From NCBI GenBank assembly GCA_964188305.1, contig OZ076902.1: 64,000 nucleotides of DNA. One strand, written 5' to 3'. Below are positions 2,918-64,000 of the stretch, in pieces. The position numbers and the translations under genes were made by a program. Within the stretch, counting starts at the first letter, position 1, and each line of letters starts with the position of its first letter. The notes beneath the pieces are model-generated. The model searched no databases and was not told the DNA's origin. It saw only the letters and a list, made by a program, of their open reading frames with translations. This stretch comes from Podarcis bocagei. Its lineage: Eukaryota.

Positions 2918-3117
2918 NNNNNNNNNNNNNNNNNNNNNNNNNNNNNNNNNNNNNNNNNNNNNNNNNNNNNNNNNNNNNNNNNNNNNNNNNNNNNNNNNNN
3001 NNNNNNNNNNNNNNNNNNNNNNNNNNNNNNNNNNNNNNNNNNNNNNNNNNNNNNNNNNNNNNNNNNNNNNNNNNNNNNNNNNNNNNNNNNNNNNNNNNNN
3101 NNNNNNNNNNNNNNNNN
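2918..3117. other. Assembly gap (200 N)
   Basis: Direct reading. Confidence 1.
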
Positions 3118-43000: not shown

Positions 43001-46000
43001 GGCTCATTTTTACAGTAAAGCTCCTTCATTCATTTCGCTTCTGCCTTGTTTGAAGTGCCTTATCTTCTGCTTTTAACAGAGTATTATCCAAACTGTGAAG
43101 TAGTGTTTATGGGAATGGCAAACATCCATTCTATTCGGAAGAGCTTTCAGTCGCTGCGTTTGCTCTGCACACAAATGCCGGACCCAGGAAAGTGAGTGAC
43201 ATGTGCGCCTTCTCTCTGCCTCCCCCCCCCCCACTGTTGTCCCCTTGCACATCTCCCCTTCCCAGCACACACACTGTACTAATAGGTTTATTGGTATTGC
43301 TTTTTAAACAATCTAATCCTCAGTCTTCTTTTTGTCATTGTAAATAAAGGCAGTCATTTGCATGCCTTCCATCAACCTTGTGCTCTCCAGATATTTTTGG
43401 ATTGCAGCCCCCATTATTCCCAGCCATAATGGCCATTTAGAAGGCACCAGGTTAGTGAATGCTGGATTAGTTATTAGATAAGAGAAAATTAACATTTGTA
43501 ATTATTTGTATATGTTTGTTTGTGTGTGTGTTTGTGTATATATACACGCACACACGCATATATTTAATATTGGCTTTTTAAATTTAAAAAACCTAGTTTT
43601 TTTTAATCCACCTACCTCCAGACCTATTGACCTTGGCTGTTTTCCCACACAAAATAGGAGGGTTCCCCGAAATACTGCCAACACACACTCCTGCATTGTT
43701 GGCATGTGTGCAAGCTTACCTTTAGGGGGAACCTACCTGTTATTACTGTTCTCTTTGGGAACCTTGGATATGCTTCTGAGACACCCCAAGTTTTCTGGAA
43801 ATAGAGGCTTGGATACCCACTAACTTAAGCGATTTGTACTTTTTGATGCAGAAGAAAAAAAGTATACCCTCCACTTGTTACTGAAATTTGCTCAACCTAC
43901 AAACTTCACTTTAACAGAACAGAGAGGTCAAAACTATTCTCCCTTGTTGATCTGCAGCTGGCTGTCAGCTCTGGAAAGCACCAAATGGCTGCAACATTTG
44001 TCTGTCCTTCTGAAATCGGCACTTCTGGTAGTTCATGCAGTGGACAGAGATCAGCGGCCCGTCTTGGTGCACTGCTCAGATGGCTGGGACAGAACCCCGC
44101 AGATAGTGGCTCTGGCTAAGCTGCTGCTGGATCCATATTACAGGACCATCGAGGTTTGTGGCATGGGAAATAGCACAGTTGGGGGACCTCTAAATCGTGT
44201 TTAGAAAGGTTTATGGTGGTGGCTCTTCTAAAGAAGAGCATCTGTGGCCCTCCAGATGTTGCTCAGCTGCTATCCCCATTGTTCCTGGCCATTGGCTGTG
44301 CTTGCTAGGGCTAATGTGAATTGTAATTGAGCAACATCTGGAGAGTCAGTCGTCCCCCACGCCTGATCCATGTGCTTTCCTCCAAACTGCTGAAGAATAG
44401 ACTTGGCATGAAATAAAATGGATTTAATGCTGGAAGGGTTTTTTGGGGGGCGGGGGGCATAAGAGAAATGTGAGTTTGTGTCAGAGAATGAAATAGGTAG
44501 TCTGAAGTAAGGATCATTTTGAAGTGTTATTTAGGATGGCAGAGATAGAAACATGGATCTGGCCCTTGGGGTGCCACTTGTGTGTAAGCTCTTTTCCACA
44601 AGCCTCATTGATGCAAATGAGAGCAGCTTTTCTTCATTTCAGTGGGACTTGCCCATGAGACTTTCATAGTGAATTTGACCCCTTGCTGGTTAATTGCTAG
44701 GAGGGAAAGCATTTTGGGTTTTCCACCTCATGCCAGCATATCTTAGTTTGGCTTTGTGGACTTGAGCCTTGTGCGAATTTAATTCAGTGATGCTTCCCTC
44801 AGGGTTTCCAGGTGCTTGTGGAGATGGAGTGGCTGGATTTTGGCCATAAGTTTGCCGATCGCTGTGGTCATGGTGAGAATTCGGATGACCTGAATGAACG
44901 ATGCCCAGTTTTCCTGCAGTGGCTCGACTGTGTCCATCAGCTCCAGAGGCAGTTCCCCTGCTCTTTCGAGTTTAATGAAGCATTCCTTGTGAGTTGAATA
45001 CTTTTACACACTGCTTCTAATATTTTGAACCTTTTCGTAGTTCAGTATTCAGATATGAAAAGGAAGCTACCAAGCCCAAAAAAGTAAAAAGTAAAAATCT
45101 CTCGTTGGAGTCTGCAGAAATGCTCACTCAGAGGATAGTTAGGTATGTTCCATAGCGTTATTTAAACTCTGAATTAGAAAATCAAATTTGGAGTTCACAT
45201 TAAACTCACATATTTCAGACCTGTGTATCTGTGTTTTGGTTGTGTGTGTGAAAGAGAAATCAAGAGATCCTACTTTTCAGGCTTGTGTGCCAACAGTAAT
45301 ATAGCTGCATCCTTTCTATATAGGTCAAGTTGGTGCAGCACACATACTCCTGCCTCTTTGGTACATTCCTGTGCAACAATGCGAAGGAGAGAGGTGAAAA
45401 GCACACCCAAGAGAGGACCTGTTCAGTTTGGTCTCTGCTGCGAGCAGGAAACAAAGCCTTCAAAAATCTGCTTTACTCCTCCCAATCAGAATCTGTATGT
45501 ACTTTTTATTGTTTGCGCTCCTATAAAAATGTAACCAGTCTGGTGCACATAGTTCTTTTCCCCTTTCCCATTCCCACAACACTCCTGTCAGATAAATCAA
45601 GATGAGGCGAAGTATGATGCAGCTATATATATGATTGCAACTTAGTGGAGGTAGGCAAATTCTACTTCAAGGCGAGGCACTTCAGCCTACCTTATTGAAG
45701 CAAGAGTTTGTATCTAAAAAAGGGTAAAGGAACCTGGTCTTCCAAGACAATGCAAAACACTGCATTAGGTGACCCAACTTGGGCAATATGTTCTTGCACT
45801 GAACAAAGTTTCATGAAGCCAAAAAGACTCTCAGAGCTACAGCACTCTGAGAATAGTCAAAAGATGCAGGACACAGACCAGCAGGATGCTCCTTTCTGCA
45901 AACCCCCTTGAGATGAGTAGGAGCTGGCCAAGAGCACAGTAGTGCTCTGAGACAGTTGGTCTGTAGGTCCATGTTGCAGTTTGAGTGTCTGTCCCCATAT

Positions 46001-49000: not shown

Positions 49001-52000
49001 AAATGGCAAAGCCATACATGCTTTATTTGGTTGAGGAGGGACACTGCCTTGTATAAACATTGTATAAAGACTTGTTGATGTTGTATCAGGACTTCTTTAT
49101 AGTTATTAGCAGAAGACGCCAAAGCACTGCTGCAGCAGAGACTAACTTATTTATTCCATGTCCTGTCCAAGTTCATTGAAGTGCCTATGCATCATTTAGG
49201 CCTGTTGAAAGGTCTTGACAGTCCAGTCCACTAGTTTCTGCATTTTCTTTTGAGTGGTCAAGAGTCCTCCCTCAAAAGAGGCACCCCTGTTGCACCATTT
49301 TTTAACCTGTTGGTGGTTTTAAGGGGAAGTTCTTTGTGTCATGTGTTTATGAGTGCAGGTGTTTATGGATGCTTGGGGCTGCTCCAGAATTTTAAAAAAT
49401 GCATGCATAACATAAAGCATGAAAACAGGGTCGATCATGATGTGGCATGCAGTGGGATGGATCACCAGCTGGCAGTCCTTGATCCAAATCCCTGCTGTGT
49501 TCTGCTCACCAACGTGAGATCTGTCATTGTGAGGTCTATTCAAAGGGGAATGAGCAACTGTGAAAAGGTGGTTAGTAGCCAGCCAGCCACATGTGTCCCG
49601 TTCTTTCCTGTGCAGCCTGGATGAGAGAGAGCAAAATTGCCAGTAAGTAACCTAGTGAGTCAACAGGAAGCGGGTGGCGCTGTGCGTTAAACCACGGAGC
49701 CTAGGGCTTGCTGATCAGAAGGTCAGCGGTTCGAATCCCCATGACGGGGTGAGCTCCCGTTGATAGGTCCCTGCTCCTGCCCACCTAGCAGTTCGAAAGC
49801 ACCCAGTGCAAGTAGATAAATAGGTACCAGTCCGGCGGGAAGGTAAACCGCATTTCCGTGCACCACTCTGGCTTCACTAGAAGCAGCTTAGTCATGCTGG
49901 CCACATGACCTGGAATCTGTATGCCGGCTCCCTTGTCCAGTAAAGTGAGATGAGTGCCGCAACCCCAGAGTCGTCTGACTGGACCTAATGGTCAGGAGTC
50001 CCTTTACCTTTACCTTTAACCAAATGAATCGGGGGGGGGGGGTGAATAGAGAGAGTGGGTGGATATTTGGAAGGTAGGCTGTTGGGCTTGTGCTTGGCTC
50101 GGGATTGGTCCTCCCAAGTGATGTAGTCGTCTTAAAGGTTTTGGATGCGATGGGAAGACATTAAGACCTCAGTTGAGACTTCATTTCTACCCCAATATAT
50201 AGAACAATCCTAAGGTAGGATTGGGGAGCCTCAGCCCTAGGGGCCAAATGCAGCCCTCCAGGCCCCATCTGTTTGCCCTCTGAACTTTATCCAGGCTACA
50301 CCTGCCCTATTTTGCGTCCTCCTTGAGTGTATTTATCTGACTGGAATGGATGAAGAATAGAAGAGTGTGAGAGTGTTTATAAAGCTTATCCTACTGTGCA
50401 GAAGTAAAATTCACATCCATTGGCCACTTTTGCTTCTAGTCCTGCTCATCACTGGCCCGTGGCCCCTGGAAGGAAATGTGGTCCTTGGGCTCGAAAAGCT
50501 TCCCCTTCCGTGTCCTAAGGAGAAAGGCTTGTCCCATAGACTTCTGCTGTGTGTTGAGTAGAACTGCACAGTAGCTGGAAAACTGGTATTTTAAAAATAA
50601 CCAGTGTTTTGTTTGCACAGCCTTAAAACTGTCTGAAACTGGCCAAGGGATTTGGCTGACAGGAGGATGCTGCCATGGAGCAGCAGCATCTGCGGTGCTG
50701 GCAGAAGTGGGGTGTCTGAAGAGTTTATTCTAGCTTCTTCCCCCCAGCTGACAAAGCCTGAAAGAGAAACTAAGTACCCGTGATCTCCTCTCATTTTCTT
50801 CCCATTTTTACCCAAAGGGGATGTCTTCTGGCCACTGCTGCCACTCCATCACTCCACTGTTGCCTCTCCCAAATTGCTTGTACACCCACAGTTGCTCTAG
50901 TGAAGCCCCACTCCATTCCCTGTGCCCCACAACCACTGCTGTAGGGCTTAAATAGTCTTTTCTTCATGGTTGTATTATATGGTGCTCTGCGTGGCGTACA
51001 GTTTTTCAAATGAATTGGAAAGCAACTGAATCTGTTCAGGGATTCCATTGTTTACTGTTGGAGCTTTTGCAGCACCGTATTTATGCCACAGAGCTCTGTC
51101 TTCTGATCCACATCACACACCTCTTCAAGTATCTACCATATAGAGATAACATCAGCACCCCAATCATTGCCAAAATATATGAGCCATGAAAGTATATTGC
51201 TATCAGATATGCTCATGGCAACATTTGAATTTTAGCAATGAGTTTGGGTTTTCTGTTTTGCAGAACTTTTGAGGAATTTGGTAGAAGCCACCTCTCCACC
51301 CTATCCCATAATCTGATCTCTGAGCAGGAGGTTCAGAAGGATTCCCTCTTCTCAGCTGCCTAATCCATGTTCTGAGGGGTNNNNNNNNNNNNNNNNNNNN
51401 NNNNNNNNNNNNNNNNNNNNNNNNNNNNNNNNNNNNNNNNNNNNNNNNNNNNNNNNNNNNNNNNNNNNNNNNNNNNNNNNNNNNNNNNNNNNNNNNNNNN
51501 NNNNNNNNNNNNNNNNNNNNNNNNNNNNNNNNNNNNNNNNNNNNNNNNNNNNGTGGCCTTCCTCTCCCTTTTCCTTATATCGGCACCTGCTACTAATCAC
51601 CTGGCTCTACTCTGTATCCCTTTGGTTCTGACATTGGTCTCATGAAACCTCTTCCCTTTTGTCCCTGTTGTCTCTAATACTTAAAAATCTGTACCTGTGC
51701 CAAAGAAGCCCCATAGCTGTCAGTTTTCTGCCTTTGGACCTGCACTGGGAAATGATGAAAGCATTTTCCTTGACTAACACATGGTGTGTCAGTGTGCTTG
51801 GCTTATTTAGCTATGTAAGTGTGAGAGAAAGTTGGGGGCCTTAGCACTGGTTGTGAAAACTTGGTATTTGAGATGCTTGGTTAGAAGATTCTTCTGTTAT
51901 TTGGCCAAAGATGAAGAAACAATTCCTTCCTTCCTTCCTTCCTTCCTTCCTTCCTTCCTTCCTTCCTTCCTTCCCCTCTGTATCCTACTTACTTTCTAAA

Positions 52001-55000
52001 CCGTGTTGCTTGTATTTAAAGTTCTCTCTCTCTTTACATCTCTGTTCCCAGGTGACACGATGGCTTCCCGATCACCTGGCTGCACACTGTTACGGCTGCG
52101 ACAGTGCATTCTGGCTTGTCAGCAGGAAGCACCACTGCAGGTAATGCATGTAGGATGGATAGTGTGGGGTGCAGGTATGCTATTCTGCTGCCATGTCCTG
52201 GAGGGGCTCCTCTTTCTTTTAGCCTCTGGGCACTTTGCCTTTTATTTTTCCTTGATAAGATCACTCTCCCATGTCAGACCATAGAGCCACACACGGCAGT
52301 GTTATAGCAAGGGTAGACACACACTGCATAGCATTCTTCTTGCTGAGTCCACCATGGCCTGCGTCAGAAGGGCTTAGCTTTTGACAAGCTGTAAGAGTGT
52401 TATAAAGTTTGTCACACAGCCCACCTCCACACCTTAAAGTTAAAGTACTAGTATACCACTTTAAAGACTCCTGGCTTCTCCCAAATAATCATAGGAACTG
52501 TAATTTCTTAAGGGGCCAGAGAGTTGTTAGGAGGTCAGATTTCCCGGTGGCTTTGCACTGGGGCTTAAGTATGAATCTTAAACTTCCCACCAATGCACAG
52601 TTCATAGAATCCTGTGGAAACTTGGTCCCCAGATGGTGATTTGAGAAGAGGGACAGAACCCTTTTGCTTTACACCTGCAGTCTTGTATCCTGCCCTTCCT
52701 CCCAAAAATGCCCAAAGTTGCAAACATCAAAACATTAAAGCAATGCAATTTAAAATAAATTTTTAAAACACACATATAAAATAATTAAATGTAAAACATT
52801 TAAAAGCTGTCACTAAAGCTTAATTTCAAGTTTGCCATGGTCAGCATCTTTTAGCCATCAAATGCCTTGGGTAACCAGGAATGTGTTTCAGGGGAAAGTT
52901 AAAGTCAGTAATGAGGAAGACAGGCACATCTCACCCAAGAGGGCAATTCTGCAACTGGGGAACCACCACTGAGAAGGCCCTGTCATGGGTCAGCACCAGC
53001 CAGGTGGCAGTCGGGTATAGCGCTGCCAACAAGGCCTCCCTTTTAGTGTGTTTGCTTGTCTCAAACTTTCTCACTAACTTGTTTTGTTTTCAGTCAAGCA
53101 GCAGCACCAATACCCCCCCCCCTTTTAGAAAAATATTCCTGGGCTTACTCTGCCAGTTTAGCACCTGGCCCGTGCTCATCCTTTTACACTGCATTTTCTG
53201 CTTTGAGCAAATGTTTAAATCACCTCATAGACAGAGGTCCTCTGCTTTGTGCTGAAGTCTGTTAGAACAGGAGCTTTGGAGAATGTTGGAAATGTCCCAT
53301 TCAATTTCTTCATCTTCTAGCTGTGTCAAGACTTCTTAGCTGAGAAGGCTTCCAAAGAACAAGTAGGAGCCAATTTTGAGATTTGATCCATCTTGAGACA
53401 GTGTGTGCCATGTCCATTTCCTCAATAGTTAAATTGTGTTTCCCAGTCTGATTTCTGTGGCTCTCTTTATTTTATATTAAAATCAGAGGCATGTGCCTCA
53501 TATCTCTTCACCACCACCAACCCCCCCCCCCAACCACCATCACCACCACCAACAAAAAACCCAAACCAGTTTATTTTCTGCAATAAGAAATGATGTTTCT
53601 CAGTGGAGGCCATGCACTGTGTTTCTGCACGTGTTCTTGCCATGCCTACTGATTGGAGGAAGGTGGGTCCGAAGAAAGATACCATGCAGAGATGCAGCAG
53701 GGACAGCATCTTCCATTGCTGGGCCATTGTTGGGCTCGCAGGGGCCATTTAACTTCATTTCTCACAGCACACTAACATTTTTTATTTAAAACATAGCTGT
53801 ATATTACCTTCTCTCAGGCTAGCAGGAAAAGACAGTGGTCTCACCTTGCCATTTCTGGGGGAAAACCCACAAATCCTCTGATTTAGTCTCCCCTCTGAGC
53901 TTTTTCTCCCCTCCTTGCAGGGACCCTGACCGTGTTGATCAGACTTGGTGAGCATTTGGAACAGCCTCTGTTGTCTGCTTGCACTTCTCCAATAACCTCT
54001 TCAAACTAACCTTTGACTCCCTCCCCTGCACTCCTCTTGCCCATAAATCATTACACCAAAGACGAATGGTAGCAGCCCAGTTGGATATTGAGGTCTGTGG
54101 GCCTCTTTTCACGTTCTACTAATAAGACTTTTTGTTTCATACTGCATACTGCAACTTTGGCTAACATGCAAGTGGCTTATCTGCAATGAGTATTTCAATT
54201 ATAAGAGCAGGCAATTTCTGTGTATTGAGTGGTAGCATCCGGTTTGGTGGAGTGGAGACCCCCTGTATCGCTGCAGCTTACCAGCTAGAGCTGCAGCAAA
54301 GGCAATGTGTCCACCCTGCCCTGGCCCCATCCAGGTAAGCTGCAGTGACACCAGTGTCAGGAGGACAGCTCTAATCCTCCACACCTAACACCACTGGTAT
54401 ATAGAAACCAACACATTATTTTGGCCTTTTTCCGTTGAATTTGGTATTACAGAGAGCTGGCAGCTGTTGGGGAGTTCTTGAGCAGTACAGGGAGAGAACC
54501 TTACCAATCACTTCTGAAATAGCACAAGAGTGAAAAAAGCCTTAATTGTGGGCTAACGGGCACTGAGTGAGGGGCAAGGCAGCATGAGCATTAGGGTCTC
54601 CTCTGCTAGCCAGGTGGAGTCCCTGAGAAGGAACATGACTTTGACACTGAGGGCCAAGAGTCTGGCAAAAATCCTGAAATGCATATAAGAACCTGCTTAG
54701 GGACTAAGTGATCCCTTTGCGTGAGATTTGAACAGATATACCCAGGCAGAAAATTCCACAGATAGTCTCTCTTTTGCACAATGTCCAGGAGTTTCTCTTG
54801 AAAGGAAATATTTAGTCGTCTTTTGGCAGCTAGGTCGGGCTGTGAACCCTCACCCTTTCAGAATCTTCACTGTGAGGGCATTCGAATGGCTTTTTCATAG
54901 AGTGGTCTGTCTTCACTGCCTTGTTGTTTTCACTCCTGCTGTTCTCTCTGATAGCAGTGTCTATTGGAGTCCATAAGAAGACTTCCAAATCACCAGCCCA

Positions 55001-56217
55001 AGTCTAGCCCTGAGTGAGTGATATCTAGAGGTTGCTTTGCCATGCTAGAAATATGAAAGTTTGTGAGATGAAAAATGTTTCCCTTTGCCTGTTACATCGA
55101 CAGTTAACATAAAGAAAAACCACACCTGGCACGAACTCTTTATATAAAGCCAGTTGCCTCCTATCTCCCACTATTAAGCTACTGGAGAAGAGCAGATTAA
55201 ACCTGCTATGTTTGTTTATGCCAACCTCAAGGCACCTGTAGTGAGGTGCAAAACAATTCTTACCTAATGCTTGCCTATATCTGCAAGCCAAAGATTATGA
55301 ACCAGGGACCTTGTCCGCTTATGCTGCTCAGAGCTGCATTTGGGGGAAAGCAGGTTTGAGATCAGAAGTGGGGGGTTGTGGGGTTCTAGTTGCACGCAGG
55401 ACCCCATCCCTGCCCCAAGATGCATGTGCTGTTATGGCCCTGCTGTGGCTGACAACTGACAGATGTGTCAGCTGCTGCATTCCTCATTCACTCAGTATGT
55501 GGGCTGCATCTTTTCTGGCTGCTCACTGCGTGGCTTTGCATGGTCCCCATGGACTCACATTTTCTTTGTGCTGAAAGACAGTGTTGCTGTAGTTCCCTTG
55601 AGCTGCAGCTGGCTCACTTCTGGCTTATGTAGGAGTTGACTGGCTTGCCAGTCTTCAAGGCTCGATTCTAGTTAACTTCTTTTTGGGAAGCAACAGCCAG
55701 GAGCAGATGGAGACATAGCTGAAGTGTTCCATTGCACTGAAGATAGGCACAAAAGAAATTTGTGGCTCGGTTACAGGCTCTTTTCACCCCTCCAGATCAC
55801 CATTTCTGGGCTGGCATCATAGCAGACATCACCATCCCGTGGCGCTCTGAGCCACTGCAGCTTGCAGGGGGGAAAGAACTTAACCCTCTTCCACCCAAGC
55901 TGCTCTTTGGCAACTAGCCCAAAGGCTCTCTCCCCCCCTTAACCTTTTTCTGCAAGCACCAACTTAAGACATGTACTGTTGTGGAAACTACATTTCTGAG
56001 TTGCAAATTTACTGTAATTTCTTCTCTTCCTGTTCCTGACTGAAGGAATTGTGGGAATGTCTTTTGCTCCAGCTGCTGTAACCAGAAGGTGCCGGTCCCC
56101 AGTCAGCAGCTCTTCGAACCCAGCCGGGTCTGCAAATCCTGCTACAGCAGCTTACATCCCAGTAGCCCCAGCCTTGACCTCGAACTGGACAAACCTATTG
56201 CTGCCACCTCAAACTGA
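24105..56217 (+). CDS. MTMR3: Myotubularin-related protein 3 (PH-GRAM, PTP-type phosphoinositide 3-phosphatase, coiled coil, FYVE); spliced CDS of 1158 aa without and 1167 aa with the microexon
   Basis: 17 GT-AG coding exons join in frame. Translation gives MDEETQHSLECIQANQIFPRKQL..., catalytic HCSDGWDRT, FYVE RKHHCR/NCGNVFC and C-terminus LDKPIAATSN, all recognisable as MTMR3. Confidence 0.98.
25445..25534 (+). CDS. MTMR3: MTMR3 coding exon (DEETQHSLECIQANQIFPRKQLIREDENLQ)
   Basis: TTTTCAG| ... CAG|GTAGTC; 90 nt. Confidence 0.97.
26110..26391. mobile_element. Tc1-mariner/pogo (Tigger-like) MITE
   Basis: TIR (C/T)AGTCGTACCTTGGTTTTC / GAAAACCAAAGTACGACTG; TA TSD. Confidence 0.8.
26923..27039 (+). 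CDS. MTMR3: MTMR3 coding exon (VPFPELHGESTEY...KFKESIVN), PH-GRAM
   Basis: CAACAG| ... AAT|GTAAGT; 117 nt. Confidence 0.97.
29923..30110 (-). mobile_element. CR1-like LINE 3' fragment
   Basis: GCTGGATCAG...TAGTCCAGCATCCTG motif; opposite-orientation relative at ~25740-25900. Confidence 0.5.
32353..32435 (+). CDS. MTMR3: MTMR3 coding exon (VPLQLIESVECRDIFQLHLTCKDCKVIR)
   Basis: TCACAG| ... CAG|GTATGT; 83 nt. Confidence 0.97.
33368..33534 (+). CDS. MTMR3: MTMR3 coding exon (CQFSTFEQCQEW...GDLCRP)
   Basis: TTTACAG| ... CAG|GTATGA; 167 nt. Confidence 0.97.
34527..35013. mobile_element. Young hAT (Charlie-like) MITE with CpG-rich interior
   Basis: Perfect 15-bp TIR CAGTGTTTCCCAACC; perfect 8-bp TSD CCTTAGAC (34519-34526, 35014-35021). 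Confidence 0.92.
35523..36953 (+). mobile_element. Sauria SINE interrupted by a DNA transposon (SINE parts ~35523-35681 and 36772-36953)
   Basis: tRNA-like head GGTGGCGCTGTGGGTTAAACC...GGTTCGAATCCC, (ACCTTT)n tail, TSD TAATTTCTT; collinear with intact copy at 49666-50017. Confidence 0.9.
35682..36771 (-). mobile_element. Non-autonomous pogo/Tc2-type DNA transposon with transposase C-terminal remnant
   Basis: TIR C(T/C)GTATT(T/C)TTCGC(T/A)CCATTGGAC; TA duplicated; minus-strand KKCGISNALDG plus acidic tail. Confidence 0.85.
37030..37126 (+). CDS. MTMR3: MTMR3 coding exon (GEHVSSRFKNEVERMGF...NEKYK)
   Basis: TTGTAG| ... CAA|GTAAGT; 97 nt. Confidence 0.96.
37546..37941 (+). mobile_element. Tc1-mariner/pogo (Tigger-like) MITE with internal tandem palindromes
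   Basis: TIR CAGTGGTGCC(C/T)CGCAAGACGAA; TA TSD. Confidence 0.88.
38191..38304 (+). CDS. MTMR3: MTMR3 coding exon (LCSSYPQELIVP...RSWKRIPAVVYR)
   Basis: ACACAG| ... TAG|GTGAGG; 114 nt. Confidence 0.97.
39567..39772 (+). CDS. MTMR3: MTMR3 coding exon (HQGNGAVISRCGQPEVSWWGWRNADDE...LSDVEF)
   Basis: CTACAG| ... TTG|GTAAGT; 206 nt. Confidence 0.97.
40008..40637 (-). mobile_element. L2-clade LINE 3' fragment with (AAT)n tail
   Basis: ORF 40282-40659 encodes LDYCN...LQLIQNAAARLV...HITPVLKDLHWLPV, typical of L2 ORF2 C-terminus; (AAT)14 at 40008-40049. Confidence 0.88.
41076..41207 (+). CDS. MTMR3: MTMR3 coding exon (DSSISNASG...LILDARSYAAAVANRAKGGGCECP)
   Basis: CTTCAG| ... CAG|GTGAGT; 132 nt. 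Confidence 0.97.
42234..42479. mobile_element. Tc1-mariner/pogo (Tigger-like) MITE, sister of 17680-17926
   Basis: TIR CAGTGGTACCTCGGGTTA; TA TSD. Confidence 0.88.
43080..43191 (+). CDS. MTMR3: MTMR3 coding exon (EYYPNCEVVFMGMANIHSIRKSF...MPDPGN)
   Basis: TAACAG| ... AAA|GTGAGT; 112 nt. Confidence 0.97.
43958..44153 (+). CDS. MTMR3: MTMR3 catalytic exon, CX5R motif HCSDGWDRT at 44070-44096
   Basis: CTGCAG| ... GAG|GTTTGT; 196 nt; intact active-site Cys and Arg. Confidence 0.98.
44803..44988 (+). CDS. MTMR3: MTMR3 coding exon (GFQVLVEMEWLDFGHKF...FEFNEAFL)
   Basis: CCTCAG| ... CTT|GTGAGT; 186 nt. Confidence 0.97.
45324..45494 (+). CDS. MTMR3: MTMR3 coding exon (VKLVQHTYSCLFGTFLCN...YSSQSES)
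   Basis: ATATAG| ... TCT|GTATGT; 171 nt. Confidence 0.97.
46920..47065 (+). CDS. MTMR3: MTMR3 coding exon (VLYPVCHVRNLMLWSAVY...DQPLGR)
   Basis: TCTCAG| ... CAG|GTGAGC; 146 nt. Confidence 0.97.
47292..48687 (+). CDS. MTMR3: MTMR3 large exon (disordered linker plus coiled coil QQRLRQIESGHQQEVETLKKQVQEL)
   Basis: CTCAAG| ... GTG|GTAAGT; 1396 nt; matches ORF 47326-48696. Confidence 0.97.
49666..50017 (+). mobile_element. Full-length Sauria SINE
   Basis: tRNA-like head with B box GGTTCGAATCCC, conserved core, (ACCTTT)n tail. Confidence 0.9.
50216..50512. mobile_element. Older hAT (Charlie-like) MITE; relative at ~61441-61773
   Basis: 8-bp TSD TCCTAAGG on both sides; degenerate TIRs. Confidence 0.65.
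51381..51552. other. Assembly gap (172 N)
   Basis: Direct reading. Confidence 1.
51923..51974. repeat. (TTCC)n microsatellite upstream of the FYVE exon
   Basis: Direct reading. Confidence 0.92.
52052..52140 (+). CDS. MTMR3: MTMR3 FYVE N-half exon (VTRWLPDHLAAHCYGCDSAFWLVSRKHHCR)
   Basis: TCCCAG| ... CAG|GTAATG; 89 nt; WxxD and RKHHCR motifs. Confidence 0.97.
53921..53947 (+). CDS. MTMR3: MTMR3 alternative 27-nt microexon (inserts DPDRVDQTW into FYVE)
   Basis: Long polypyrimidine tract then TGCAG|GGACCCTGACCGTGTTGATCAGACTTG|GTGAGC; phase 2-2; near-identical to the recalled human isoform insert DTDRVDQTW. Confidence 0.9.
56046..56217 (+). CDS. MTMR3: MTMR3 last coding exon (NCGNVFCSSCC...RVCKSCY...DKPIAATSN*)
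   Basis: Polypyrimidine tract then CTGAAG|; TGA at 56215-56217. Confidence 0.97.
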
Positions 56218-58775
56218 GGCTCCAGCGTGGAAGGAAAGCTGGGAAGAGACAGCACCACCTCTCCCTGCTAAGCAGATACGCACATTTCTCTGCTGACTGA
56301 AGCTGGTAGGACTGGAGAGAAGCCTTGCACTCTGGAGTCGGGAGGAGAGATGCTCAGAGGGACAGGATGCTGGGCCTGTACTAGTGGAGCAGAAACCCCT
56401 CCTTTCCAGCTGTTCCTCCCAGTGTCATTTTCATCCACCTCATGTAAATTTTGTGTGGATTTTGCTGGAAGATGACGAAAAGAGGGTCTGGAATCTTCCC
56501 CGCTGGCATTTCTGTTGCCCTACTGTCTGAACTGTGCTGCAGACGGAGGATTCTACCTTGCTGTGAGAGGAAGGGAAATCGGTCCAGAGACCTTGTGAAT
56601 ACCTTGTAGCGTCGGTGCTTATGCTTTCTTTTTCCCCAGTCACTCCTGTTACTTCCCAACAGCAACCTGCTGTTTGGGAAGTTGTTGCTGCTAGAAGAAA
56701 TGGGAGCTGCCTTCTCAAAAAAAAAACCTCTCTCCCTCTCTGTTCTTAGAGTGGGCTTAGTTATCCTTGCTGCACGAAAGGGCAGGCGTGGCGGAAGGGG
56801 CGGCAGAATGGGTTGCAGATCTCCATGTTGGGCAGTCCTTTGCCGTTGTTGGCAGACTTGTGGCTCAAGGTAGGCAATGCCTGGACCACTTTGGCTAAAG
56901 AAAGTGTACGCTTGTTTGAGGGAAGTGAGAGGGAAGGGGGATTGGACAGACCATTCCTGTTCAGGGTTGTATTTTTAAACTGGCACCTCACTGTAAGACT
57001 CTTGTACATGCAATTTGTTTTGAAGGAACTGGTGTTTGGGCTTATTACTAGCTGTTAAAATGCTATCCTTGCCCCCACTTTTTTCTTCTTAAAAAAAGAT
57101 AGTTTACACAGAAGTCAGAGCTGCTTCGCTGCACTGGGAAGGCTGCATGCAAAGTCAAACAATACTGTTGGCCAGGCTCCCCCTCTCACAAGGAGAACCC
57201 CAAAGCAAATGGGGGGTGGCTTTGATTTGTTCGGGGTTTTTCTGCACAGGAGAGTCAGTGAAAACTGGTTTGCCAAGGCCCCCCAAACTAGGGCATTTTA
57301 ACAACTGCCCCCCCAAAAAAAGATATGTATGTAAAGATACAACTCATCTAAAATGAAAATGTGCCCCTTACATTAAAATCACTTTTCTACTGCTGTGCTA
57401 TGAATAGTCTTGAGTCCTCCTATTTTTATTTTAATATCGTCTTCCCAACCCAACCCTGCCAACAAAAAACACTTATAGGTTTTGGTTGGTGGGCGTGAAA
57501 ATACATTTTTTTCTGCAATTCATTTGCTAGGGGAAGCTGAAGCAGCTTCTGCCTAAATATTCCACCAAGAGTGACGTGCCTCTATATTCCTCTGCCCCAG
57601 CCTGTAGAATTTGACTACTGAACATGTTTCCCTTATCACACGGCTGCCACCACTTGAAACTGCCTCAGCTTGAGATGTCTTCCTCATGGCACAAGTTCGT
57701 AGGCAGCACTGATCTCCCTCTGGCTCTTACGCATTGTGGGCAACTGTACCCAAGCCAGCAACTGTGGGGAATGTGTGGCACTGCCAGTAAAGCCCTCCAA
57801 CCACACCAAGGGGGGCTGTGTATTAATAGCATGGAGGAAGAAGAGAGACTCCAGCAGCAGTGGTGTAATAAGCAAACCAATCTTCCAAAACGAGATTGCA
57901 AAGTTAGAAGTAACCTATTGCCAAGATAGGGCAATGCCTTCTAAAGTGAAGTTTTTGAGTGTATTGGAATACCCAATAGAAGAAAGCCCTGTCAGCAAAC
58001 TTTTCTTTCTTTCCATGTTCTCTGTGAAAAGGTGTGTGTGTTGATTACAACACAGTCATACAGGGGAAGCATTTGGGAATGAAAATCAAGTCTTTCCAAG
58101 AGGCATAGGAAGAGACTTTGCACCTTTTAAGGCAGCTTGGGGATGTACGAAGCTTCTTTGTACTCCTCCTTTCTTCCAGCTGGGAGAACGGGCAATACAA
58201 AGTCTGGCTCTAATTTGACTTTTGGATTTTTAATATAAAATTAAATGTTATGGGAGTATGCAGCAAAGATGCATAGCACTCTTTTTTTAAGAGGTGAGAA
58301 TTGCAATGGAGTAAATGGAGTTTATCAGTACTTATCCATTAAAGTGGGTGAATAGAGAGATGATTTTTGAAGGAAAAGCATAATTGTGTTGCGCACTGTG
58401 GCAGTGTGGTTTTAATGGTACAAATAGATGGTGAAAACAAGGTCTAATATTCTGCAGTTCATAACGACAGGTGCCAAGAGGTTCTGATACGGGTTTTTTG
58501 GGGGGGCGTGTCTGTGATGTACAGTGTGAATAAACGCTTGCAGCTCTTAGTCTTTTTGATCAATGAAGCACTTTTTTATTAATATTTTATTCTTTGTATG
58601 TAAAGCCGGACACTCGCGCCAGATAGCTGTGTATATATAATACTCTTCTCTCCTGAAGAGGAGCGCAAAGTTGCTCCTTTATATTTTTCAATTTTCTTTT
58701 GTCAAGAGCAAGACATAAATACTTTAGAATTGTTATATATATAAATAAAAGTGAATAAAGTTTAGAGTTTTGCAT
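56218..58775 (+). other. MTMR3: MTMR3 3' UTR (~2.5 kb; end approximate)
   Basis: No recognisable repeats after the stop; AATAAA at 58529-58534, 58744-58749 and 58754-58759. Confidence 0.7.
58744..58759 (+). terminator. Tandem polyadenylation signals of MTMR3
   Basis: AATAAAAGTGAATAAA in AU-rich context. Confidence 0.65.
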
Positions 58776-59187
58776 GGGAGCATTTGCTGACCCACTTCCT
58801 ACTTTTTTAACTGCCCCACCCTTCCGTAAGCTGGAGAAATGTGCTGCTACATCTTCCCTTTTTCCTTGTCACTGGTTTGGGCAGGGTGGTGGTGGCAACA
58901 ACAGCAGCGGTACAGAGCCTTGTTTGCCTTTGGAAGCAAGTTGACCTCTTGAGGGTTTTACTAGTATGAGATGCCCCTCCTCCTGTAAAAAAACTTTCAA
59001 AACCTTTTCATGTATATATGCGCACACACTGTGTTGTACCAAATGCACAAGCTATGAGAGACACCGGTGTACTACACAGCTACATCCCTCATTACTCACA
59101 CAAGAAGAGAACACTGCATCACCAATTGGGTATTCTGCTTGAGGTGTGTTCACTACCTCAGTGGCAGGCAGTCGGTAGGATCTACAG

Positions 59188-59321: not shown

Positions 59322-60341
59322 ATCTACAGCATTAAATAACTTTTCCTGCGCTCCCAGCTTACCATATAAATTTCCCAGTTTACCATATAAATCTGCTACA
59401 AATTTCTTTCTCCTTACTCCCTTTAAGCAGCCCAGCTAAGTATCCCACAATAAAACTAGAGTTCTTCCTAGCACTTTTCTTTCATCTGATCTGTTTTGGC
59501 AAGAATCTCCATGTTTATAGCCTTCTCTGTCATCCCCTCTGAGAGCTCCATCACACTCTCTGGAAAGACGTTCCTGTGTAAACCATTTTGCAAGTGGGTG
59601 AGACTTGATATGAACATTTGGTCTGTAGTCTTTGGTCTGTGTGCTGAGGCTACTTGGAGCTGCCGCTCCTTGGATTCCCTTGTGGTTCATTAGGAGCAGC
59701 TAACACCCATCTGGCTGGATAAATTGGCTTTCCATCTAATTAATTCCATGGATTTTCTTCTGAAACCACCTACAGCTTTTGGGGTTGCAGCCTAAGTGCT
59801 TGCAAATTGGAAAGGTTCCTAGGGCTTAAATGGGGTCTTTTTGGTTTGCAGCAGTTATATGGGCAAAGAAAAAGCCTTCAGAACTTACTAGTTGGGATGC
59901 ATACACACACACACACACACTGCTTTGTAACCTATATCATTTAGCCCTGTTACTATCTTTGTGTGTTGTTTCTTGATAAGTGTACCTGAAATGTAACTGG
60001 GAGCTAAGCATGTGTCCGATGGAGGAGCCACATTCCAAACTTTTTGACACAATGCCACTGTCCTTACAGGTCAGGCTTGGTTTGTATTCCATAATGAGCT
60101 AGAAGTTGGTTATGCTGAGAGGTCATAACATACCTGTATGTCATTAAGGTAGAGGCACAAAGAGTAACTTGGGGATCTGTTCAACTGTGATTTGCAGCCA
60201 TGGATTGCATCCAGACTTGGGCTCATACACTTCTTTCCATATCCTCATGGCTGTTAAAAATTAAGAACTGAAAAGAGTTGAATGCACACAGTTGAATGTA
60301 GTGTTTTGTGGCAAAGGCTGTTTGTTTCTCAAATTTCTACT

Positions 60342-60435
60342 TTTATTTACTGCAGTCTTTGCCAGCTTACTTCAGAATAAGCAATACCTTTTTTATTGTA
60401 TCAGAACTGTCTCTCTCCCCACTAACTTCTTTATT
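60342..60435 (-). terminator. Cluster of three polyadenylation signals for the minus-strand gene
   Basis: TTTATT (AATAAA on minus) at 60430-60435, 60392-60397 and 60342-60347, just after the stop. Confidence 0.6.
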
Positions 60436-60471
60436 CCAGGATAGTGCATGGCATCTCTTCTGCCTTCCTTC

Positions 60472-60598
60472 TTACAGTCTTCCTTTCAGAACTGGGTGTT
60501 TGTCATAAACCAAGGAAGTATCCAGAGAAGCTGCTCCAGTGCTATAAGACCCAGCTTTGTCTTCACTGTCCACAGGGCACATGTCTTGGTGACACCAT
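60472..60598 (-). CDS. ACAD-like last coding exon (WCHQDMCPV...KGRL*)
   Basis: CTCTTACAG| acceptor; TAA at 60472-60474. Confidence 0.82.
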
Positions 60599-63500
60599 CT
60601 GTAAGAGTTGCAGCAAAGCCCCTTGTGTACAACTGATTTAAACTGGAAATCTGGTTTTAAACTTTAAACCCATCAATGATTCTCCTACTGCATTAAGCAG
60701 AGGTGGTGAACCCTTGGCCCTCCAGGTGTTGCTGAGCTACATCTCCCATCATCAAGGCTGATGGGAGTTCTAGTTCAATACCTTATGGCGGGCCATAGAT
60801 TTCCCACCTGGCTAAGAGTTTGCAGGAAACTGCCCTGATGTATGTGGGAAACTAAATATTATCTCTTCAGCATAAGCATCAACATTTAATATTTATATTT
60901 AGTGAAGAGATTTGAGACCATCTGCTCTGCCACCCATGTTCTGGAGCCTAATGATCACAAGGCACGTGTGGTCCCTTTAGAAAACCAAACAGTACAGGGC
61001 AGCCTGCTGGATAGATTTGACTGACCACTCTGAAATGCTTATGTGAGAGTTGACCACCTTCCCACCAATATCACACAGCTCTGTCCTCTCATTATGTCCC
61101 TCTCTCGCTTCCCTACATGCATACAGCCTGGCTCTCTAGAGCCGTATGAGAGGTTGTCTGATCTAAACTGCTTCTCTTCAGCCTTGACAGCTGCACTGAC
61201 TTTCAGCATTCCAGGACTGCCCCCCTTTCTTAAGCAGTTAAAAATATGAATATGTCTGTGCCATCTTAGAAATTGCTTTGGAAGATGGACTAATCGTATT
61301 TAATACCTCTGAGCAGTATAGATGTCTGTGGCTGATGCATTCGGCCTGGCAGCATATTCCAGCAGGAGAACTCCTATGTAAAGCAAATATATAGGTGGTT
61401 AACATTACTGAGCTATTGTCCAAGTAACATTCTGCTACAGCAGGGAGGGGAAACCTCAGGTTAAGGGGTCAAATATGGCCCTCAAGCACCACTTAACCTG
61501 GCCCTTAAGACTCTCCCTACACCAACCCCTCACTACACTTCTGTCATATCCTATTTGCATGTTTAGGCTGGCTGGAATATTCCCTTGAGCTCTAATAATG
61601 CTGCTTGCTGGAGGACAGAGGTGCACAGAAGCTACTCTATTGCAAAAGGTAAAATTTACATTTATTTCTCCACCACTTTGGGTTTGGGCATTACTCATCA
61701 CAGGTCTGTGGTCCCTGAAATGTTTCCCTGAATGGTATGCAACCCTCTAACTGAAGAAAGTTCCCCATGCCTGTGCCAGAGACCTGTCAGTCATACGTGA
61801 GTCATTCTGGCCCATGGTGGGCCTTTGTGGCATACAGACTAGTCTGTGAATATCCCCCCACCCCCGTATACACCTAATGCCACTAAAGTAACAGCAGTCC
61901 AAATATCTAGTGCCATCTCTTTCCCACCCCTGCCGGGTGTTTTGTCTTTGCCAAATTTAATTCCAGAGGCAAAAACTGAAAAATGGGATTTAAACTAGAA
62001 GGTAGTGAAGATAACGTTTCCAGATGGGTGTATGCCTGAGGAAGTACAGTAGTCAATAGATCAGGTAGTCACAGGTGGTGGAACAGATAATGGCAGTGAT
62101 TGGGAGCAACAAGGAAAGCCATTGGCTTCTCTGAAATTATACTGATCACTGGCAGCCTGCTTGCTTAAAACGACAGCGGTTCACAAGGACAGGAGATTGT
62201 GCATCCAGTATCTTCTGAAGAATTCCGAGACATGTTCTTAGGAACAATTGCCTCAGTGAAAATAAACTATTGCAGCTTGATGTGCTGGCTTTCCAAGAAA
62301 TTCAGTTCTGTGCTAGTAACTTAAATCTTTTTGATGTCCATTGATTTGGTGCTGCCCTCTTGTGTACTGCTATGTGCCATATGATGTTAGTTGTACTAAG
62401 GGAGCCAGACTCTCCTTTGTATCAGGAACTAGAACACATTTTGTGCCTGTCAAAAATCCTCTTTTGATTGTCAAGGTATTAGAAACAGCTGTTTTTCAAT
62501 TATGGATTTCTTCTCCCTATCCCAAAGTAAATTTATTGCATCTTTTACATTAAGACATTTTACACCTGCCTGAGATGAGTCACTTGCTACGTGGCTGTGC
62601 ATCCAGTCAAAAAAATACCACTTTTTAATCATTGGTCATAGACTCGCAGTGCAGAGTTGGGTTGGAAGATCACCCAGAAATGCCCGGTGGTCATAAGCTT
62701 CAGCGTACTTCAGTGGTATTCTACATCATTCTGTAGTAAGCTGGCAAAGTGATTATTTAACAGCATTTTCATTACCTCCATAGATCCGTGCCAGAGCATA
62801 GGCAAAGTCTCTTGCAGACAGCTGCATCCCGGCTTCCCCCTTTAAGCTTATTTTCTGAGTGAACTGTTTGAGTTTGTGGAGAGAATTTTGAACTATTTGC
62901 ACAGAAAGTTCCAGTTCAGTAATGCTAAGCGCCACCTTCAACTTGGTCTGCAAGGAAATAAAACATATGTTTCTCGAAACAGCCAGTTCTGCTGTCCAAT
63001 CTAAACCATATTTTCAGCTGTTAGCAAATCTGAACAAAAGTTTACATTTTCCCCCAGACAACTATGTTGATCTGAACAAGAAAGAGCCTTAGGGTACCTT
63101 AAAGAATTTACAGTTGTTAGTATGACATAATGTTTTAAGAACTTGAGTCCACTTTATCACAAGTGTAAGTGTTATCACATAGTGCAATTGGGAGGGTCCT
63201 CCAGCTATTGTTAGACTATACCTATCATTCCTTAATAGTGCTCATGTCAGCTAGGTGATGGAGACTCCAAATCCCATGTTGCAGCTTCCCAATCACATCT
63301 GGAAGGTCATGCCCCCCCCCCTTGTCATAGAATAAAATGTTTCATTGTTTTATTGCTTGCTTGCTTGCTGCCCTGGGCTCCTTTGGGTGGAAGGATAGAA
63401 TTTAAATTTAACAAAATCACACACACACACACCCTATATACCCAGTTAATGATTATGCTCTGGAGGTGAGGGCCTTCTGCAGATGCCATCTTAGTAGGAG

Positions 63501-63770
63501 GTTCATTCCACACATTGTAACAATATGGCCTTTAGGGTTCTGGCACCTGCCCTTTGGAATCTGCTCCCTTTGAACATTATGTGCCAATTCTGTTGCCTTT
63601 TTGGTACCTGCTGAAGACCTTCCTCTTTCAACAAGCCTTTTAAGCGGATATATTTCCCAGTCTGCATCTGTACTGGAATGGTTTTTAAGATGTTTGATTG
63701 TTTTATTGCTTGCTTGCCTGCTGCCCTGGGCTCCTTTGGGTGGAAGGATAGAATATAAATTTAACAAAAT

Positions 63771-63802
<32 letters not shown>

Positions 63803-64000
63803 TAACATCAGCCCCTGCCAGCACAACTCTGTTGGCCATGGCTGTTGGAAATTGCAGTCAAAACCATTAGGAAGGCACCAGGTTGGAAGGTAGGCATAGT
63901 TTAGGATTACATTTGTAGCAGTGACATTAACAGTAATGTGTCCTTGTTGAGGAATGCTCACCTGGGCAGTAGAGAAAAATGCATCCAGCACTTTTCCTTG
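60472..64000 (-). CDS. 3' part of an AidB/ACDH-11-type acyl-CoA dehydrogenase-like gene (partial; continues beyond the window)
   Basis: Exons 63962->64000, 62776-62947, 61307-61373 and 60472-60598 with GT-AG sites and matching phases (0,1,2) give ...QGKVLDAFFSTAQ|TKLKVALS...ARDFAYALARIYG|GVLLLEYAARPNASATDIYTAQR|WCHQDMCPV...HPVLKGRL*. Confidence 0.8.
61307..61373 (-). CDS. ACAD-like exon (GVLLLEYAARPNASATDIYTAQR)
   Basis: TTTACATAG| ... GAG|GTATTA on minus strand; 67 nt; phase 1-2. Confidence 0.82.
62776..62947 (-). CDS. ACAD-like exon (TKLKVALSITELEL...LSARDFAYALARIYG)
   Basis: TTTCCTTGCAG| ... GAG|GTAATG on minus strand; 172 nt. Confidence 0.85.
63337..63797 (+). mobile_element. L2-like 3' fragment with a duplicated ~95-bp 3' end and (CA)n tails
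   Basis: 63337-63432 nearly identical to 63690-63785. Confidence 0.65.
63962..64000 (-). CDS. ACAD-like exon, truncated by window edge (QGKVLDAFFSTAQ)
   Basis: Minus-strand donor CAG|GTGAGC, phase 0. Confidence 0.75.

Follow-up and report, generated by a model that had tools for sequence, protein, structure and literature searches.

Introduction

Escherichia coli AidB, a member of a divergent branch of the acyl-coenzyme A (acyl-CoA) dehydrogenases (ACADs), serves in the adaptive response of bacteria to alkylation. Two other proteins of that kind are closer to the gene considered here. Bd2924 of Bdellovibrio bacteriovorus is a homotetramer with C10-CoA bound, and it has a Trp-Glu pair with the strictly conserved catalytic glutamate (PMC6851490). 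Caenorhabditis elegans mutants that have lost acdh-11 accumulate a beta-cyclopropyl fatty acid of 11 carbons that originates from bacterial lipids; this C11 compound activates NHR-49 and fat-7, and the mutants are rescued from their heat sensitivity when the cyclopropane synthase of the bacteria is removed (PMC10876521). The worm ACDH-11 literature that we found does not mention a vertebrate counterpart. Here we describe a locus in a 64,000-nucleotide (nt) stretch of the lizard Podarcis bocagei (contig OZ076902.1; hereafter the window), at one end of which a gene read on the minus strand is represented by its 3' end. We are highly confident that the window holds the last four exons of an expressed gene for an ACDH-11-type acyl-CoA dehydrogenase. 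This gene, which lies tail to tail with MTMR3, corresponds in vertebrates to C. elegans ACDH-11.

Exon Structure and Transcription

The exons listed in Table 1 join as 39 + 172 + 67 + 127 = 405 nt into a single open frame of 134 codons plus TAA, with phases that agree from one exon to the next. In the window sequence, AG stands at the acceptors of exons 2 to 4 and GT at all three donors; the acceptor of the 63962-64000 exon falls past the window end, so the border check comprises three acceptors and three donors. Three minus-strand AATAAA motifs follow, all within 130 nt of the stop codon. An earlier, first-pass annotation of the window had drawn four minus-strand exons with splice sites, matching phases, a stop, and three such motifs, and every detail was found where it had placed it. 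Its remark that the open reading frame (ORF) track shows only pieces of the gene is likewise borne out by three fragments in the ORF list (62753-62953, 61300-61386, and 60472-60582).

Evidence of transcription comes from four sequencing runs. Three of them (X1, X2, and X4) are contig runs of related organisms, for which the kind of library was guessed by the tool; we take them to be RNA-like because of their contrast in depth between exons and introns and because of their joints. The fourth (X23) consists of raw reads from a run recorded as single-cell RNA-seq, under the same species label as the window. Contig depth in X1, X2, and X4 is 70-400 over exons versus approximately 5-10 over introns; for the exon at 62776-62947 it is 71-398, versus 5-8 in the adjoining intron. 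The joints 60598>61307 and 61372/3>62775/6 are present in all three contig runs and have CT..AC ends, that is, GT..AG on the minus strand. An X4 contig contains the remaining joint, 62946/7>63961/2, and X1 and X2 show it through loose ends that match the beginning of exon 2 except at two substitutions. In X23, 28 reads (17 starts) span joint 60598>61307 and five reads (five starts) span joint 61372/3>62775/6. The X23 reads are almost all in the minus direction, with depths of 97 and 20 noted at the 3' untranslated region (UTR), and three of them carry a loose T run before 60321, which on the minus strand reads as a poly(A) tail approximately 21 nt after the third AATAAA. All three junctions are supported by RNA, and the exons are spliced and polyadenylated as predicted. 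The first-pass annotation had staked its gene model on spliced reads across these junctions, and joints were found in X1, X2, X4, and X23.

Table 1. Positions of the dehydrogenase exons, their associated signals, and the neighboring MTMR3-type exons in the window
Feature	Positions	Strand	Remarks
Exon 1, visible part	63962-64000	-	39 nt, 13 codons QGKVLDAFFSTAQ; truncated by window end
Donor GT of the 63962-64000 exon	63960-63961	-	
Exon 2	62776-62947	-	172 nt; first part of ACDH-11_C domain; ARDFAY..ARIYG motif
Exon 3	61307-61373	-	67 nt; VLLLEYAARPNASATDIYTAQR
Exon 4, last coding	60472-60598	-	127 nt; end of ACDH-11_C; protein terminus ...PVLKGRL
Stop codon TAA	60472-60474	-	Closes the joined frame
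3' UTR	60321-60471	-	About 150 nt; poly(A) addition at about 60321
AATAAA, first after stop	60430-60435	-	Motif only; candidate for use
AATAAA, second	60392-60397	-	Motif only; candidate for use
AATAAA, third	60342-60347	-	Some 21 nt before the poly(A) site seen in X23 reads
Myotub-related exon	43875-44204	+	Pfam, E = 4.7e-28
FYVE exon	51911-52144	+	Pfam

Relationship to ACDH-11

The peptide encoded by exon 2 matches the Pfam profile ACDH-11_C (PF22217) with an E-value of 5.7e-14 and 53 bits (cutoff 27) over profile positions 13-67 of 122, and exon 4 matches the same profile at 5.9e-7 (30.3 bits) over positions 92-122. Exon 3, whose 21 residues are below scorable length, bridges the gap between the two matches. 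The extra C-terminal helical domain that marks the ACDH-11 branch is encoded by the window exons.

For comparison with solved structures we used as query the full-length ortholog from Rhineura, which is 83.6% identical to the window peptide, and considered the best 60 matches in the PDB. C. elegans ACDH-11 (4y9j) comes first (E = 2.4e-172, 578 bits), with residues 21-589 of the query aligned to residues 16-589, followed by Bdellovibrio Bd2924 (6sd8; 4.6e-131), an acyl-CoA dehydrogenase chain of 573 residues (5ez3; 6.1e-56), E. coli AidB (3djl; 2.9e-49, over Rhineura residues 72-472, ending before the C-terminal domain), and the 6ijc chain (3.3e-26). The remaining chains, classical ACADs included, score 5e-22 or weaker. 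The first-pass annotation had placed the gene in the AidB/ACDH-11 branch rather than among the classical ACADs, and the PF22217 matches and the rank of ACDH-11 in this search uphold that placement; of the two relatives that it named, ACDH-11 stands as the closest characterized protein, whereas AidB turns out to be only a distant cousin.

A direct Pfam scan of the Podarcis muralis protein (P0174) found four domains: AidB_N, ACAD middle, ACAD C-terminal, and ACDH-11_C. The same architecture (AidB_N, Acyl-CoA_dh_M, Acyl-CoA_dh_1/2, and ACDH-11_C) recurs in the precomputed Pfam annotation of approximately 200 homologs of about 590-650 amino acids. The motif WEGT[TS]N is present in 190 of the 193 collected proteins of at least 520 amino acids, including those of Podarcis, Rhineura, koala, platypus, and chicken, and W-E-G-T-T-N is identical in ACDH-11 and Bd2924 when these are aligned to the Rhineura ortholog. 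The AidB_N, ACAD middle, and ACAD C-terminal domains and the W-E-G-T-T-N motif were seen in orthologs, their exons being located past position 64000. Judging from the orthologs of other lizards, the full P. bocagei protein would comprise AidB_N, the ACAD core, and ACDH-11_C, and would carry the catalytic glutamate motif.

Conservation among Squamates

The window peptide aligns without gaps, over all 134 residues and to the exact C-terminus, with the annotated proteins of P. muralis (P0174; 94.8% identity), P. raffonei (P0163; 91.8%), Rhineura floridana (P0023; 83.6%), and Hemicordylus (76.9%). At the DNA level it is 94.5% identical to the P. muralis locus over 9.5 kb, introns included, which marks the stretch as lacertid DNA. 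Exon borders, AG/GT dinucleotides, and the stop codon are common to the window and the fetched loci of Podarcis (L003) and Rhineura (L001). The exon at 63962-64000 is identical at 39 of 39 nt to L003 20304-20342 and at 38 of 39 nt to L001 21251-21289; that at 61307-61373 is identical at 66 of 67 nt to Podarcis and 62 of 67 nt to Rhineura. Relative to Rhineura, exons are 87-97% identical, versus 67-72% in the alignments of neighboring introns, and the ratio of nonsynonymous to synonymous substitution rates (dN/dS) is 0.34 over the 134 codons. Among 30 columns conserved in at least 90% of 187 vertebrate homologs, the window keeps 26, and at the other four the replacement is conservative (S for A at two of them, Y for H, and M for L).

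The 785-amino-acid P. muralis isoform P0174 has a long, atypical N-terminus, and around residues 621-632 it reads NARDFNLTVLTIWEGTTN, where P. raffonei and other species have ..ILRDAQVLTIWEGTTN; it is possibly a mis-modeled isoform.

Distribution and Apparent Loss in Placental Mammals

Homologs were searched with exon 2, which returned eight proteins, mostly fragments, and served as a source of relatives rather than as a measure of distribution, and then with turtle and koala proteins. The gene is annotated in well over a hundred vertebrates, mostly as "ACAD11(-like)," P. muralis and P. raffonei among them. Its holders include turtles, squamates, tuatara, gharial, many birds, frogs, salamanders, caecilians, lungfish, and coelacanth, and further bichir, sturgeon, gar, teleosts, and Callorhinchus. 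The first-pass annotation had presented a hidden, unknown enzyme; that description falls, given the near-identical genes annotated in P. muralis and P. raffonei and the entries in more than 100 vertebrates.

With the koala protein as query, the best matches are all from marsupials, eight species with identities of 77-89%: koala, wombat, tammar wallaby, dunnart, bilby, opossum, Gracilinanus, and Tasmanian devil, the last two of which were found by resolving two unnamed protein clusters. Below the marsupials, identity is at most 66%, in caecilians, turtles, tuatara, echidna (66%), and platypus (63%). No placental protein is among the matches listed for this query (120 proteins, down to 53% identity, with the 8000 best word-sharing candidates scored). 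An intact placental ortholog would be expected near the top of the koala matches; because none is there, the gene has apparently been lost in placental mammals and kept in monotremes and marsupials. The earlier proposal that it was kept in reptiles and lost in mammals holds in part: no placental ortholog is among the matches listed, but echidna, platypus, and the eight marsupials retain it. As for an intact ortholog in human or mouse, which the same annotation had seen as telling against it, neither these species nor any other placental contributed one to the koala-query matches listed.

For the opossums (P0075 cluster: Monodelphis domestica and Gracilinanus agilis), a single chromosome record lists several "ACAD11-like" proteins under separate names, and Gekko kuhli (P0024, P0028) and Erythrolamprus (P0054, P0055) have two distinct proteins on one contig each. 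These extra copies may be lineage-specific tandem duplications.

Locus and Other Features of the Window

The presence of Myotub-related and FYVE exons on the plus strand of the window agrees with the earlier placement of the dehydrogenase as a convergent gene beside MTMR3. By alignment to the Podarcis locus, the stop codon of the MTMR3-type gene lies at approximately 56.2 kb, about 4.2 kb from that of the dehydrogenase. The order of a divergent HORMA-domain gene, the dehydrogenase, and a convergent Myotub-related+FYVE gene is found in P. muralis, koala, and platypus; the fetched Rhineura locus spans the dehydrogenase and the convergent Myotub-related+FYVE gene, and in P. bocagei the HORMAD2 side lies outside the window. 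HORMAD2, which we take to be the neighbor of MTMR3 in human, had been named in the first-pass annotation, and the HORMA gene on the other side of the dehydrogenase in Podarcis, koala, and platypus fits that. The broad spread of the gene, in all jawed-vertebrate groups sampled and, among the matches listed, in no placental, combined with its fixed position between HORMAD2 and MTMR3, makes this a clean, datable case of apparent gene loss, and the HORMAD2-MTMR3 interval is a defined place in which to look for placental relics.

Between the convergent stops, a plus-strand segment of approximately 3 kb (55827-58823) is 75% identical to Rhineura, versus 67-72% in the dehydrogenase introns, which fits a long, conserved 3' UTR belonging to the MTMR3-type gene. 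A direct repeat of two 100-nt copies (63333-63432 and 63686-63785), 96% identical and 353 nt apart, lies in the intron that separates exons 1 and 2, and both copies finish in (CA)n/(GT)n. At this repeat one X4 contig "goes back 350" (joint 63722>63373), which suggests that the number of units differs among related lizards. In the last intron, contig depth at about 60700-60795 is very high (104 in X2 and 352 in X4). Numerous contigs have loose ends at 60717-60718 and 60751-60756 that run into unrelated sequence. This segment behaves like a dispersed repeat, resembling a short interspersed element, that belongs to many transcripts and lies outside the dehydrogenase mRNA. Runs of N occupy 2918-3117 and 51381-51552 of the window.

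Proposed Function and Cellular Location

The product of the gene is most likely an FAD (flavin adenine dinucleotide)-containing homotetrameric acyl-CoA dehydrogenase that would act on, or tightly bind, medium-chain acyl-CoAs. Its substrates may be unusual branched or cyclopropyl acyl-CoAs, as implicated for worm ACDH-11. Provided that the gene is intact, we put the chances at even or slightly better that its product depends on FAD and dehydrogenates medium-chain acyl-CoAs, possibly branched or cyclopropyl ones. A far-reaching extension, to which we give little credence, is that non-placental vertebrates keep a twelfth acyl-CoA dehydrogenase, a true ACDH-11 ortholog, that would clear unusual medium-chain acyl-CoAs, such as bacterial cyclopropyl or beta-branched ones; left in place, these would bind lipid-sensing nuclear receptors as ligands and raise the expression of stearoyl-CoA desaturase. 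If this were true, the loss on the placental stem would mark a changed input of diet- or microbe-derived lipids into the control of membrane composition.

Among the homologs compared (P0014, P0023, P0040, P0165, and others), the protein ends in -GKL or -GRL in most sampled tetrapods, lungfish, sturgeon, and bichir, and the window C-terminus is -KGRL (60475-60483). Birds end in -SRL, a canonical peroxisomal targeting signal 1 (PTS1) tripeptide. Marsupials, platypus, the sampled teleosts, and some squamates (Anolis, Sceloporus, and Varanus) are without this ending. Many full-length forms have an arginine-rich N-terminus without acidic residues that resembles a mitochondrial presequence. To go by these terminal sequences, the cellular location is possibly dual.

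Naming and Significance

The name "ACAD11-like" was most likely inherited from the database name of the worm protein. The label "ACAD11(-like)" invites the wrong transfer of function from human ACAD11, a matter of concern for fish, chicken, and goose expression studies that list the locus; the database names of the proteins from Gallus (P0040), Amphiprion (P0125), Scleropages (P0100), and Sarcophilus (P0222) carry this risk into fish and bird studies. An RNA-seq study of liver lists chicken LOC417013 under an AidB-like name (PMC12111442). The gene itself is already predicted in close lizard relatives, and for the window its description is routine annotation. Wider value comes from three points: its orthology to ACDH-11, its misleading name, and an absence specific to placentals at a well-defined locus. 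The gene is an ordinary one, with an evolutionary footnote of modest interest.

Alternative Readings

Several points weigh against the assignment of the window exons to a working ACDH-11-type enzyme. The window carries 134 codons only, and the catalytic and FAD-binding parts are seen just in orthologs. When exon 2 by itself was searched against PDB sequences, the matches were at chance level only (staphylocoagulase, E = 0.5), with neither ACDH-11 nor AidB appearing; as not even ACDH-11 is retrieved, the C-terminal domain is the least conserved part of the protein. Relative to P. muralis, dN/dS over the 134 codons is 0.72, a value from just 10 differences, and in the literature that we found the vertebrate members have incidental mentions in expression lists (chicken and goose) only, with no paper on their evolution. 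That dN/dS, the clustering of several substitutions in exon 2, and the position of the upstream exons, unseen past the window end, would suit a gene that is transcribed but decaying in the lizard lineage, a pseudogene in the making. Such decay is highly improbable given that the frame is open, the stop codon is at its ancestral place, the splice sites are intact, the highly conserved columns are kept or conservatively changed, several related species have spliced, polyadenylated RNA, and dN/dS relative to Rhineura is as low as stated above. The pseudogene reading was rejected on the open frame, the conservation, and the RNA evidence. A strictly AidB-like protein, meaning a flavoprotein of low activity with a DNA-binding C-terminal domain that guards against alkylation damage, would account for the AidB_N domain of the orthologs, for the significant AidB match in the PDB search, and for the name "AidB" that some sources give to members of the family. 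It is nevertheless very unlikely: ACDH-11 and Bd2924 are far closer, and presequence-like, arginine-rich N-termini would be ill suited to a DNA-bound protein. The AidB alignment ends at Rhineura residue 472, so the window-encoded C-terminal domain is not covered by it, and an AidB-type DNA-binding role was rejected with that domain unmatched.

Orthology to human-type ACAD11 (or ACAD10), the kinase-plus-dehydrogenase of 4-hydroxy-acid catabolism, is suggested by the database name, and we regard its probability as negligible. Mammalian ACAD10 and ACAD11 are defined by their kinase domain (PMC12440821, PMC11342911). That domain (APH/kinase, PF01636) is found in neither P0174 nor any homolog listed, and the best 60 PDB matches, headed by ACDH-11, include no chain of ACAD11. 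ACAD11 orthology was rejected on domain content (AidB_N, Acyl-CoA_dh_M, Acyl-CoA_dh_1, and ACDH-11_C, with no APH). The main mechanistic rival is pure sequestration, in which the protein would be a ligand sink or sensor that holds medium-chain acyl-CoAs or fatty acids and so limits the activation of lipid-sensing nuclear receptors. The full-length similarity to ACDH-11 favors it, whereas the retention of the WEGTTN catalytic-glutamate motif, in nearly all of the long homologs as counted above, argues for catalysis, and the window sequence is silent on ligand binding; we judge a pure sink unlikely, if less so than the other rivals. Sequestration was reportedly the original proposal for worm ACDH-11, and the thermal idea of the first-pass annotation builds on it. 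The worm model beneath that idea has been revised (PMC10876521). A role in membrane fluidity or thermal adaptation of ectotherms is speculation, unsupported by the present data, and it is weakened as a reason for retention because endotherms (birds, monotremes, and marsupials) also keep the gene. An expressed ACDH-11-type dehydrogenase gene thus remains our strongly preferred account of the window exons.

Comparison with Known Systems

Human and mouse ACAD11 and ACAD10 share with the lizard gene the ACAD superfamily fold and the name; they have an N-terminal APH kinase domain, are without AidB_N and ACDH-11_C, and are not orthologs. E. coli AidB (PDB 3djl, 3u33), a protein with an AidB_N domain, falls within the same divergent ACAD branch, but it is far more distant and its DNA-binding C-terminal domain is unmatched. 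Bd2924 (PDB 6sd8, 6sda) is the second-best solved relative and also a divergent ACAD; unlike the lizard protein it is bacterial and has 505 residues, and its alignment stops at residue 483, its C-terminal domain not being alignable to the part encoded in the window. The nearest genes are those of P. muralis and P. raffonei, with the same stop, the same exon borders, and the same HORMA and Myotub-related+FYVE neighbors; P. muralis is a different lacertid, and its protein differs from the window peptide at seven amino acids, mostly in exon 2. Among characterized enzymes, C. elegans ACDH-11 (PDB 4y9j, 4y9l) is unlike the lizard protein in its C-terminal domain, the window part, which is the most diverged region, and like it in the full-length homology of the lizard ortholog, in the four-domain build that includes ACDH-11_C, and in the WEGTTN motif.

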